DNA of 63,963 bases, filler included, from Olpidium bornovanus S191 (lineage: Eukaryota; Fungi; Olpidiomycota), in the NCBI GenBank assembly GCA_017911155.1. It is 26 parts of 26 records of this genome, joined end to end, with 100 filler letters (N's around TTAATTAATTAA, not from the genome) between each part and the next. Parts side by side here need not be neighbours in the genome. Positions count along the whole stretch, not along the records: positions 16,139 to 20,231 come from JAEFCI010006315.1; 25 more parts are not named here. One strand, written 5' to 3'. Made by a program: the position numbers and the translations under genes. The notes under the pieces are model-generated. The model was not told the origin of the DNA and searched no databases. It saw only the letters and a program-made list of their open reading frames with translations. Shown here piece by piece: positions 16,039 through 20,592 of the stretch. Position 1 is the stretch's first letter. Every line of letters begins with the position of its first letter.

Positions 16039-16216
16039 NNNNNNNNNNNNNNNNNNNNNNNNNNNNNNNNNNNNNNNNNNNNTTAATTAATTAANNNNNN
16101 NNNNNNNNNNNNNNNNNNNNNNNNNNNNNNNNNNNNNNCGCGCGCGCGGGGGTTGCTGACACCACCCACCCCCCCTTTTTCCCTGCAATTATGGCCGGTA
16201 CGACCTACGGTTGCAG

Positions 16217-17744
16217 TTTGGTGAAATCAGATTCGTCTTGGTCGGGTTTCTTCTCATGGTCAGTGGCAGCTTCGTTGCATTTAACGCTTCGAATATTTCA
16301 TTATTGCATCCGTAATTACTATTGCATCGATGTCGGTTCTGGCGCGGCTCTGAGCGTCCGTTGCTTTGCTCAACCGTCGCTTCGCTCATTCCAAATTGCT
16401 TTCTACGTAGTTGGCGGGAATTTCGTTCGACGCCGTTCGGCTGGTTATGATCCAGAAGCTCCTGAAGAGCGAATCTTTGCAAATGGACACTCTCACGTCG
16501 CTTTACTACATCGCGCCGGTTTCAGCCGGCTGCAACATGCTGATCAGCATCATTTTTGAATCGTCCTCGGTGACCCTGGACAAGTTCCTCAATGTCGGGC
16601 TCTGGCCTTTTGTCCTCAACGGGATAGGTAAATTTATCTGACAACTGGGTGTGGCAAACCCGTATTTGCCGATGCCTGCATTTGTTTGTTGTGTGTTTTT
16701 TTTTTTTTTTTTTTTTTTTGCGGATCGGATGTTGAGCGAACGAGTCCCCGCTTATTAGTCGCCGTGTGTGACTACCTTCGGTCTCACCCGATCTTCTCCG
16801 CCGTGCGCAAAACGCAGTTTCCTTTGGCCTCAACGTAGCCGCCGTTTCCGTGGTAAAGAACACGTCCACGTTGACTCTCGGCTTGGCCGGTGTCCTGAAA
16901 GACATCCTCATCGTCGGCATGGCCATGCTGTTCTACGGCACGCCGATGACCTTGCTCCAGGCTTTTGGGTACACCATGGCGATGACGGGCTTGATGTATT
17001 ACAAAAACGGCAAGGACGTCTTCGGGTTGTGTTCTGGAGGGTGCAGATTCGCGAGGCCGTCAGTGCTCCATTACCGCCAGGTCGCCCAAATCGGCTTGCT
17101 GTTAATGGCCGTCGCCTCGTGCGTGCTGCTATACCGCGTCAAGGACGAGGTCCAATACGTCGATCAGACCGCGGCGTGCGCGGACAGGGTCGTGCAACTG
17201 ACAGTCGTCCAGTCGGCGCACATCGGCCTGCCAGCCCCAGAAGGCTTCCCTACCTCCGACAAGGTGGCCGTGATCGTCGAGACGAGGGCCCTGCCGACGC
17301 TGGTCCCCCTGATAATGCATTTTGCTGGCGTTCTGGCTTGGGACTGGCACTGTTGGTTTTTGTCCGATGACCGGTCCCTCGTCGTCTACCAGCGTCTTTT
17401 CATCCGTTTCGGCCGAAAGCGTCGCGTGGTAATGCGGAAAGTCTATCTTGGGGGATGGGTCCTCGCCTGGTAACGCCTCGCCCGCTTCGCCTTTTTTTTT
17501 CCGCCTCCAGTTCACATATTTTACAGTGACGCAAACAGCCACATGTTACTTAGCTCGAACCCGATCCAGCGGATGATCGAGTCGGGAAAGCTGAACATGA
17601 CGCTAATACCGCCGCTGATAGAGATGGGCAACGGCGAGCTCACCAGCCGGTTCATGACGGATCCATGGTTGTGGTCCCAGATCCAGCAGGAGAACGTACG
17701 TGTGTGCAGTTGTCGCGCGGAGAAAACGGGCGCAGCGAGCCGGC

Positions 17745-17775
<31 letters not shown>

Positions 17776-18645
17776 GAAAGAAAAATGCGCCGGCTTGAGA
17801 AACCTCACGGAAAACGCGCTCAAAATTCTTATCAGCTCTTCCCCCCCCCCCTTTTCCCCCCCCCAACGCCGCAGATCCTCATATTCCAAGCGGATTCGGT
17901 CTTGTGCGCGCGGTCAAACCGGCGGCCCGAGGATTTCTTTGAGTATGACTACGTGGGCGCACCCTGGCCGGCGTCGGACGAGTCGGGGAACGGCGGGCTG
18001 AGCCTCCGCAAGCGGTCGCACACCCTGCGGTGCATCCGGGAGCAGCCGCGGAAGCCGGGCATGGCGGAGGACGTCTATTTCAGCAGGACGCTGCAGAGCA
18101 TCGGCGCGCTGGTGGCGCCCCGGGACGTCTCGGCTGCGTTCAGCGTCGAGGCGGAGTTTGAGGCCGAGCCGCTGGGCGTGCACCAGCTGTGGGCGTCGGC
18201 GTTCCCGAAAAACAAATTATCGAAGCTGTACGAGTACTGTAAGCGTTTTTTTTTTTGACGCGCCAGGAGGGATCCTAGTCTTTTTCGCGGGAGAAAACGC
18301 GCGCCACGGGTATCCTTTCCCCCCCTGCCCTCCGTCTTCCGGTTCATCGAAGCCTTCGTTTGTTGTACTTTGGTAAACGCCCCCGTTGACACTCTTCACG
18401 CGTTTTTTACTTCTTTTTTTGTCTCAGGTCCAGTACGTTTCTCTTTCCTTCGCAGGGTTTCGGTCAAAAGTGGGGGTGCAAAAAACAAAAAAAAAAAAAT
18501 AAGAGTAAAAAAAGAAAACAAACGAACCGCGTCCTCCCTAACGATTTTTCGCCCGGCCGGTCTTTTGCAGGAGATTGCGCTCACCGGATGGCAGCCCGAC
18601 GACGTCACCCCTTTAAGCTACTCGCTGCCAGTTCCGCAGAACTGA
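16217..18645 (+). CDS. TPT-family nucleotide-sugar transporter fused to DUF5672 (putative glycosyltransferase-like) domain, 5'-partial
   Basis: Exons 16217-16258, 16411-16627, 16818-~17351, 17511-17695, 17875-18238, 18428-18432, 18571-18645. TPT motifs: DAVRLVMIQKLL, TSLYYIAP, NTSTLTLGLAGVLKDIL. DUF5672 motifs: KVAVIVETR, LVPLIMHF, PWLW, ILIFQADS, YDYVGAPW, GNGGLSLR, EDVYF, FSVE, PLGVHQ, YCPE. Both halves share one open frame in 16818-17351. Confidence 0.82.
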
Positions 18646-18996
18646 AAAAAAAACGTGCGGCACCACCCTGCACCACCCCACCCCCCCCCTTTTTTCATCA
18701 CTCGCCACAATTTCTTGTACCAAAATTTAACACGCTTGGCCCTCCCCCCCCCTTCTTCCCTCCTACTTCGTCCCCGGGGTTTCCGGTCAAACCCCCCCCC
18801 CCTCCCCCCCCTTTCCTCTTCCCACCCCCCAGTAGCAAGCACCCTGACGCTGTTGCCGCGCGCCCGGATCCCATTTTGCGGCCCTCCCCCCCCCCCCCCC
18901 CCCTCCCTGGCGGGAACCTCGGCAAGTTTTCGCGCCGCTGACCGGGGCGCCCACCCCGCCGTCGCCGCTCTTTGTCGTTTCTCGGCGGCTAAAAAG

Positions 18997-20150
18997 TCAT
19001 TACTGTTGTTGACGTGAGTTTAGCTACGCGTTCGGTCCGGGTTGTTGCGCTTTGCTGAAGCGGCCCGGAATTCCCCGTTTCCGGAAACGGGCCGTCCGGC
19101 CCCTCCCCCCGCCCCTCTCCTGGCCGGCCGGCCGCGGCGATTTGCGCGGGCGTTATTTCGGGAACTGGCCACGCCAACTCCCGGCCACACGCCCGGTTTT
19201 GCGGCTCATGCGGGCCCGCGGAAAACGAGGACAGTGCGAGAACTTTGCGGGCTACGAGGACACGTCGTACACAGCGCGCATGCAGGCCCAATACACGGAC
19301 GTCATCCTGCTCAACAAGCACGAGCATGTACGGCGACGCAAATCCTTTTGTAACTCTCCGCGGCTTGCGCGTGCGCTTGAAAGCTTTCCGCAGAAGAGTA
19401 ATTCCCCCCCCCCCCCCCCCCCCCCCCCCCGGCCCCCCCCCCCGGCTGACGCTTGATGACCCGCGCCGCCGCCGCCGCCGCTGATCGGGGGAAAAAAAAC
19501 CGTCGCAGGTGTCGGAGGCAAAGCTCGACGAGGTTCTCGACCGCGTCAACGACCTGAACACCGACACCGTCAAGGTCCGGTGCGAGGAAAAAGCCGGCGT
19601 GCACCCCGACCTGGTTTTCGGGTTGGACACCAAGCTTTTCCAGCTCTCGGGGTCCGCCCCGCCGGACGACGCCGGCTGCTGCTGCTCCACCATCTCCTCC
19701 CCCCCCTCCGGCGACGACGACGGCCGCCGCGCCGAGTGCACCCGGCACATCCGCCGGGACGGCCTGATCGACGAGCGGCACCACGACCGGGAACTCGACC
19801 TCGTCAAGATCCACCGCCGGCTTTCGCCGCCCGGGCGGTCGTTGGCGACGGTGGGGGAATTCGAGGCCTTCCTGGCGGCCCTCCCGAAGGAGGACGTTTA
19901 CCGCGTCAAGGGCCTCGCGAGGCTCGAGCCCGGTGCCGGGGGAACGCCCGCGCTGTACATCGTAAACTGGGCGTTCGGGAGGACGTCGCTCGTGCCCGTC
20001 ACCAGGACCGTCGAGGACGAGGAGAGGAAGAGCTTGCAGTACCGGATTACCGTTATGGGCGTAGACCTGCTCGTGCACAAGGACAGGATCGTCCGAGGAC
20101 TTTGCCTCGACGCCGCGGAAGTCAGCCTCCACCTTAGACGCGCCGCGTAA
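18997..20150 (+). CDS. CobW/COG0523-type metallochaperone GTPase, C-terminal half only
   Basis: 17-nt exon 18997-19013 (VITVVD), exon 19235-19327 (CENFAGYEDTSYTARMQAQYTDVILLNKHEH), exon 19509-20150 (LDEVLDRVNDLN...VYRVKG...IVNWAFGR). Confidence 0.85.
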
Positions 20151-20592
20151 TTTTTTTTTTCCCGTTTTTTTTTTTTTTTTTCTTTTTTTTTTCCCCCCCC
20201 CCCCCCCTCTTCACGGATTTTCCACGCAACCNNNNNNNNNNNNNNNNNNNNNNNNNNNNNNNNNNNNNNNNNNNNTTAATTAATTAANNNNNNNNNNNNN
20301 NNNNNNNNNNNNNNNNNNNNNNNNNNNNNNNAAAAAAAAAAAAAAAACACAAAAACAAAAGGCAAAACGGAAATAGACGACAGAAAAAAAAAAAAAAAAA
20401 AAACGCGGCGGGCCAAAAATGGAGGCCACCGAGGACTTGCGAGGGCTTGCGGGGAGCGCGGGCGAGGGGGCCGCGCGGGGGGTGGGGGGAAAGTGGGAAG
20501 GAGGAGGGGTGAAGGAAGGGATAGGAACGGGAAAAACGCACATGCGTCAACTGCGTCATCGCAATCACGCGTTTGCAAACCGGCTCCCTCTC

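Follow-up and report, generated by a model that had tools for sequence, protein, structure and literature searches.

An in-frame link between a TPT-family transporter and a DUF5672 glycosyltransferase-like domain in the fungus Olpidium bornovanus

Does a nucleotide-sugar transporter of Olpidium bornovanus, a root-parasitic fungus, continue in frame into a DUF5672 domain, and could the two form a glycosylation module on one polypeptide? Nucleotide-sugar transporters and Golgi glycosyltransferases are known to cooperate and sometimes to associate. The question was raised by a sequence-only reading of the window, by which we mean the whole stretch of 63,963 nucleotides that was analyzed. Positions 16139 to 20231 of the window are the entire 4,093-nucleotide contig JAEFCI010006315.1 (assembly GCA_017911155.1, Olpidium bornovanus S191), and the reading's placement of this DNA in an early-diverging fungus was correct. 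The same reading proposed checks by profile searches, RNA across 17000-17300, topology and fold prediction, and a search for the fusion in other early-diverging fungi. We consider it likely that the locus is one gene, in which a TPT/SLC35-type transporter leads over a basic linker and an 11th membrane helix to a luminal stem and then to a complete GT-A-type DUF5672 domain.

One open frame from the transporter into DUF5672

The two domains meet within a single exon, which is made up as follows (dN/dS, ratio of nonsynonymous to synonymous substitution rates).

16818 to 17351, plus strand: junction exon, transporter end to DUF5672 start; open for 177 codons, codons from 16820
16818 to 17005, plus strand: last two TPT helices, ending GLMYYK; PF03151 match; dN/dS 0.02 against the Olpidium relative
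17006 to 17077, plus strand: basic cytosolic linker, about 24 codons; 5 K/R and 1 D/E in the 30 residues ahead of the helix
17078 to 17134, plus strand: extra (11th) membrane helix; hydropathy peak 1.92
17135 to 17263, plus strand: luminal stem, about 40 codons; no indel against the relative; dN/dS 0.42 for block 17147-17263
17264 to 17351, plus strand: first DUF5672 strand and helix (VAVIVETR...HFAGVLAWDWH); alignment and family model

The single frame passes from the transporter end through linker, helix, and stem to the first DUF5672 strand, just as the sequence-only reading had described it, without a stop or an intron. An open, in-frame link of 86 codons between two domains has a chance of about 2% at this base composition. 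For the window gene, family and homologue searches used single exons as queries, and folds were computed on database relatives. Residues 4 to 61 of the junction exon matched positions 233 to 290 of the 291 in the Pfam TPT profile PF03151 (expect value [E], 7e-6; 26 bits); the score is under the gathering cutoff of 30 because merely 58 profile positions fall in the exon. On the other side, exon 17875-18238 matched PF18922 (DUF5672) with 80.6 bits, well past the cutoff of 24.4 (E, 1.4e-22). Segment 17264-17351 aligned with residues 100 to 127 of the family protein P0153 and with all DUF5672 proteins of the alignment, and it corresponds to strand 1 of the predicted model.

The arrangement around helix 17078-17134 is that of a type-II membrane protein: one helix with positive charge on its cytosolic side, then a stem and a luminal domain. 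The charges (K+R 5 and D+E 1 before the helix, K+R 3 and D+E 4 after it) agree with a luminal DUF5672. The domain is placed in the lumen because the C terminus of the transporter is cytosolic, as known for the family, and the helix then crosses the membrane. Helix, charges, and transporter orientation together gave the luminal topology that was to be checked. The 11th helix stands in for a type-II signal anchor.

An exhaustive HMMER search with the junction exon over 1.84 billion representative proteins found five that cover the whole junction. P0003 is the public model of the window gene. Two further Olpidium copies, about 80% identical, are P0001, encoded on a Logan contig, and P0004, encoded on a second contig of the S191 assembly. 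P0005 comes from the chytrid Borealophlyctis nickersoniae and is 47% identical, with a full transporter beginning at Met, on a contig that stops about 190 nucleotides past the junction; the fusion was in this way found in another early-diverging fungus. P0006, 36% identical, is from an ENA metagenome, where its source is an AT-rich organism. Each of the five carries the frame from the transporter through the extra helix into the AVIxExR...HF...LG.(D/E)W segment, and the 11th helix is kept in P0001, P0004, P0005, and P0006. Counted by contig, the in-frame link recurs in four independent contigs besides JAEFCI010006315.1, drawn from three other data sets. The junction frame ends at one shared intron position in every locus, the position of intron 3 is the same in L002, L003, and L005, and the exons downstream of the junction in L003 are DUF5672 (Pfam E, 6e-7).

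Comparison of the window with L001 (Logan SRR10938843) showed exons without indels. dN/dS was 0.02 for the transporter end, 0.38 for linker, helix, and stem together, 0.20 for the DUF5672 start, and 0.26 for the next exon. Within the link, the linker block 17006-17086 (27 codons) has neither a stop nor an indel against the Olpidium relative (dN/dS, 0.36), and block 17087-17146, holding the helix, gave 0.23. In contrast, three introns were 48 to 73% identical, with 18 to 65 gap columns. The link is therefore translated and under selection. The stem is poorly kept in distant relatives in both length and sequence, as stems usually are.

The fusion gene is associated with Olpidium in at least three copies whose proteins are about 80% identical, and two of these lie in one assembly (L005 is JAEFCI010003852.1). 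Paralogy, haplotype divergence, or a mixture of strains may account for the copies.

The exon borders of the gene rest on three lines: RNA contigs and alignments both with family members and with a relative that is 78% identical. X1 and X2 denote RNA runs from two studies, whose cDNA origin is clear from their spliced contigs. The remaining parts of the gene are as follows.

16217 to 16258, plus strand: transporter exon (FGEIRFVLVGFLLM); RNA joint 16257/16410 in X1 and X2; kept in L001, L002, and L005
16411 to 16627, plus strand: transporter exon, TPT family middle helices; translation, RNA joints, and homology
17352 to 17510, plus strand: intron 3, 159 nucleotides, GTTGGT...CCAG, in-frame TAA at 17471-17473; alignment with the relative; retained in RNA contigs
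17511 to 17695, plus strand: DUF5672 exon (F-HIFYSD...TDPWLWSQIQQEN); gapless alignment to P0002 and P0153; dN/dS 0.26
17875 to 18238, plus strand: DUF5672 core exon (FQADS, YDYVGAPW, GNGGLSLR, EDVYFS, FSVE, PLGVH); PF18922 match; RNA joint 17695/17875
18428 to 18432, plus strand: 5-nucleotide micro-exon GTCCA; X1 and X2 RNA contigs; flanks CTCAG and GTACGT
18571 to 18645, plus strand: last coding exon, stop TGA at 18643-18645; translation

Exon 16411-16627 has 49 to 85% identity to its counterpart in four other loci (dN/dS, 0.18), and exon 17511-17695 is also kept in L001, L003, and L005. Four exons of the window gene align in order with 16 DUF5672 members, including the N-terminal AVIVExR strand and the C-terminal CPE, both of which lie outside the Pfam model. 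The motifs that the sequence-only reading had assigned to the later exons (FQADS, GAPW, NGGLSLR, and YCPE) are all present, YCPE only by way of the micro-exon. In the RNA contigs of X1 and X2, CCA stands between 18240 and 18571; the micro-exon GTCCA completes the CPE motif on which fungal DUF5672 proteins end. It was overlooked by automatic gene prediction. The 3' untranslated part reaches at least 18731 (X2 contig).

In a detail beyond the sequence-only reading, the junction exon ends at 17351 and not at the stop at 17471-17473; what follows 17351 in that open frame is intron. Placing the intron at 17352-17510 gives a protein that aligns gaplessly to standalone DUF5672 proteins. In the relative, a GTGAGT donor is aligned to the GTTGGT at 17352, the exon flanks and the acceptor CCAG (17507-17510) are conserved, and the intron interior is unalignable (48% identical, 18 gap columns). 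An intron at 17470-17526/17538, with the donor as in the public model P0003, was ruled out by alignment with the relative and with P0002. The segment starting HCWFLSDDRS belongs to that rejected model, and its likeness to the DUF5672 family is spurious. P0003 also omits part of the linker and the FQADS segment, contains residues coded by intron, and is merged into the CobW-like neighbor; the public gene model of this locus is wrong and should be corrected.

Domain families and a possible mechanism

The TPT family is part of the drug/metabolite transporter (DMT) superfamily. In organisms without plastids, its members are nucleotide-sugar or related antiporters of the endoplasmic reticulum (ER) or Golgi, with both ends cytosolic. 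Membership of the window protein is given by the match of the junction exon to the last profile positions together with P0005, which scored 94 bits over profile positions 4 to 290 and whose hydropathy peaks are consistent with a multihelix DMT transporter. The upstream exons of the window match the same relatives as the junction exon does. The N-terminal helices are present in the paralogue P0004 and in P0005; the window contig starts inside the gene. A nucleotide-sugar/nucleoside-monophosphate antiporter working in the ER or Golgi is the most likely identity of the transporter. The UniRef label of P0003, GDP-mannose transporter, is automatic, and the substrate is not readable from sequence. 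With the junction exon as query, the feature search of the ESM Atlas gave generic transporter clusters only.

Fungal DUF5672 members are 345 to 400 residues long and have an N-terminal anchor, which agrees with their earlier description as standalone type-II membrane proteins. Structure prediction, run on a DUF5672 family member, gave a Rossmann-like GT-A glycosyltransferase fold, as the sequence-only reading had anticipated. On the strength of this model, DUF5672 is a predicted GT-A-fold, glycosyltransferase-like enzyme, with catalysis putative. Searches of the Protein Data Bank (PDB) by sequence with the DUF5672 exon and with P0002 gave nothing meaningful and no solved relative. Our literature search found no relevant paper on DUF5672 function and a single mention of the name, in an unrelated context.

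These parts suggest how the protein could work. The transporter would stand where an ordinary type-II transferase of the Golgi has its short cytosolic tail, and it would hold the catalytic domain in the lumen, beside the pore that delivers the donor sugar. An activated sugar would be imported, and the tethered luminal GT-A domain could pass it to an acceptor (glycan, protein, or lipid); once dephosphorylated, the nucleotide by-product would exit as the antiport substrate. Fusion would fix a 1:1 stoichiometry and a shared location for donor import and donor use. Retention of intron 3 may give a transporter-only isoform. The substrate class, the catalysis, the organelle, and the channelling advantage in this scheme are what we infer from its components.

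RNA over the locus and competing readings

The junction is crossed by RNA contigs of both X1 and X2, so the check for transcripts over 17000-17300 came out positive. A 1,776-nucleotide X1 contig runs from upstream transporter exons to beyond the stop codon, with four GT..AG joints, and adds 185 letters upstream of the contig edge; an X2 contig spans 16468-17373.

Several findings weigh against a complete one-polypeptide module. The 5' exons of the transporter lie off the contig, and the one solved relative found for it by sequence is 5y78 (E, 1e-5), a phosphate translocator of plastid type. The fold evidence for DUF5672 comes from a relative that is 31 to 37% identical to the main DUF5672 exons and 27% identical to the short last exon. 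The canonical DxD after strand 4 is absent, and a conserved QxD(S/T) stands there instead (FQADS in the window; residues 195 to 199 of P0153). The missing DxD does not exclude activity, because metal-independent GT-A enzymes such as BoGT6a also lack it. The RNA assemblies of X1 and X2 keep intron 17352-17510 while all other introns are removed; the retained intron has the in-frame TAA at 17471-17473, a stop 40 codons into the intron, which leaves most of DUF5672 untranslated. The raw-read RNA runs X18 and X21, which bear the same species label, yielded only low-complexity poly-A/poly-C reads and no coverage of the gene and are uninformative. The proposal of a module on one polypeptide was in this way upheld as to the in-frame fusion, which is real, conserved, and crossed by RNA, and left short as to the product, since the transcripts seen retain a translation-stopping intron.

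This retention leads to the strongest competing reading, in which the fusion is off in this copy. The product would be the transporter with the 11th helix, the stem, 30 DUF5672 residues, and 40 intron-coded residues, and the downstream DUF5672 exons would be an untranslated relic or serve only in the paralogous copies. Besides the contigs of X1 and X2, this reading is favored by the intron 3 donor, a weak GTTGGT in the window and a textbook GTGAGT in the relative, and by the word shares of nine runs (0.62 to 0.65), which are nearer the value expected for the retained form (0.64) than that for the spliced form (0.56). Yet exon 4 is under purifying selection (dN/dS, 0.26), and exons 4 to 7 have intact family motifs with no stop or frameshift, while the downstream introns, including those around the micro-exon, are accurately spliced. 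Contigs lose minority isoforms, and two runs had word shares of 0.57 and 0.53, which lean to the spliced form; with a sampling error of about 0.03, this is a hint only. We therefore regard a fusion that is off in this copy as unlikely, although not negligible. Contigs show presence and not absence, so a spliced form that yields the complete product may exist, and a transporter ending in a short stub in the lumen may be an additional product of this copy, or even its main one.

Some irregularities of the assemblies fall in the same region. The X1 contig is unspliced from 16816 to 17695 and carries a TT insertion in the T-run of intron 3 behind 17491. The X2 assembly graph breaks at 17364-17373, where contig 3 ends (17373); contig 4 covers 17364-17601 at a depth of 25 compared with 6 to 10, with 215 unrelated letters before 17364.

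Two proteins could also be made from one locus, with the transporter ending near GLMYYK and a type-II DUF5672 protein beginning at an internal start of transcription or translation, perhaps one of the Met codons of the final transporter helix; on this view the common frame is incidental. In-frame Met codons do occur just ahead of the linker, standalone DUF5672 proteins share the layout of tail, anchor, and stem, and overlapping transcripts are compatible with the contig data. Nevertheless, none of five loci from at least three species has a stop codon between the domains, the linker is free of indels with a dN/dS below 1, and the depth of the X1 contig is uniform over the junction, with no excess of molecule starts reported. 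In other chytrid transporters of this group, the corresponding position is taken by other luminal domains, and this speaks for true fusions. Two separate proteins seem improbable to us.

An artefact of assembly or annotation has been effectively refuted: although the S191 assembly is fragmented and was obtained by binning from zoospores that had been washed off cucumber roots and were not axenic (PMC7865070), and although P0003 is clearly wrong, the junction lies inside one continuous exon and was seen again in RNA contigs of independent studies and in the four contigs from three other data sets, leaving this reading scarcely any probability.

Related fusions, known systems, and the rest of the contig

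Many of the nearest relatives of the window transporter end are longer proteins. DUF3431 (PF11913) follows the transporter end in 8 of the 10 relatives scanned, behind an extra helix in the six that also match TPT; named sources of TPT-DUF3431 proteins include Irineochytrium annulatum and Gaertneriomyces sp. JEL0708. Relatives listed with DUF3431 behind the extra helix are P0010, P0033, P0034, P0036, P0070, P0097, P0117, P0133, and P0181. A model of the DUF3431 domain of P0117 (predicted local distance difference test score, 71.5) again matched GT-A enzymes only, and more weakly than the DUF5672 model did (E, 8e-6; template modeling score, about 0.3). P0090 (Geranomyces variabilis) and P0112 (Synchytrium microbalum) consist of transporter, extra helix, and a K(I/L)DDD domain of 330 to 370 residues for which no Pfam family was found; they may be a third kind of transporter-enzyme fusion. 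Several further relatives carry the 11th helix alone. P0158 and P0160 (795 to 875 residues) have two DUF5672 stretches and then DUF3431, and DUF5672 is elsewhere fused to GT4-type (PF00534/PF13692), GT10 (PF00852), and GT17 (PF04724) domains as well as to DUF3431. The pairings of transporter with DUF5672, transporter with DUF3431, and DUF5672 with DUF3431 are as expected from a shared pathway.

The sequence-only reading had taken the fusion as a Rosetta-stone clue to a Golgi glycosyltransferase fed by its own donor-sugar importer. The parallel fusions to DUF3431 and to glycosyltransferase domains strengthen that clue; the complete module, transport, transfer, and the Golgi site stay presumptive. 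A wider scheme is possible, and we offer it tentatively: in zoosporic fungi, one transporter clade may repeatedly have gained luminal GT-A-type transferases (DUF5672, DUF3431, and the unnamed K(I/L)DDD domain), and in Olpidium intron retention may switch between transporter alone and full module. If this scheme is true, DUF5672 and DUF3431 would be new glycosyltransferase families of one pathway. The two domains occur widely among fungi, and no function has been published for either.

Compared with ER/Golgi transporters of the TPT/SLC35 (DMT) type, such as yeast Vrg4 and plant UDP-sugar transporters, the window protein is alike in its TPT match to the last profile positions; unlike Vrg4-type transporters, it adds the 11th helix and a luminal extension of about 290 residues. 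Type-II Golgi GT-A enzymes offer the other comparison (GT8 glycogenin, the xylosyltransferase domain of LARGE1, and LgtC; GT6 BoGT6a; GT15 Kre2/Mnt1; GT24 UGGT). The window protein lacks sequence similarity to any solved structure and has QxD at the place of DxD, and it is anchored by an entire transporter in place of a short tail. The chytrid TPT-DUF3431 proteins, which are database entries only, share with it a transporter, an extra helix, and a luminal domain with a GT-A-like predicted fold, but their luminal domain is PF11913 and not PF18922, and the fold evidence for DUF3431 is weaker.

SLC35A3 forms a noncovalent transporter-glycosyltransferase assembly with MGAT enzymes (PMC6453868). 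The window protein resembles that assembly in placing donor import beside donor use and differs in being one polypeptide. The PF03151-PF18922 architecture is already in databases as "MAG: hypothetical protein BJ554DRAFT_8268," which is not characterized; our literature search found no paper on a natural covalent transporter-transferase fusion and none on DUF3431 function. A natural fusion conserved over fungal lineages would be direct genetic evidence for transporter-transferase coupling. It also gives DUF5672 a concrete, testable role, luminal sugar transfer with an imported donor, and the parallel fusions do likewise for DUF3431. With the transporter as partner, fewer donor sugars need be considered, as its cargo suggests the sugar used by the enzyme.

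Contig JAEFCI010006315.1 has a G+C content of 59%, spliceosomal introns of 138 to 190 nucleotides, and long homopolymer runs. The neighboring gene downstream of the fusion, at 19238-20150 on the plus strand, matches CobW_C weakly (E, 0.004); an intron interrupts it at about 19331-19508. Between 18650 and 19200 there is no visible exon for a GTPase domain, so the gene looks like a fragment or like one whose 5' part is unusual. The open reading frame at 19052-19453 matched no Pfam family. Homopolymer and GA-repeat tracts lie in introns and intergenic DNA at 16690-16720, 17745-17776, 18480-18500, 18880-18905, 19406-19443, and 20150-20205, and these tracts drew the spurious low-complexity reads from run X18.
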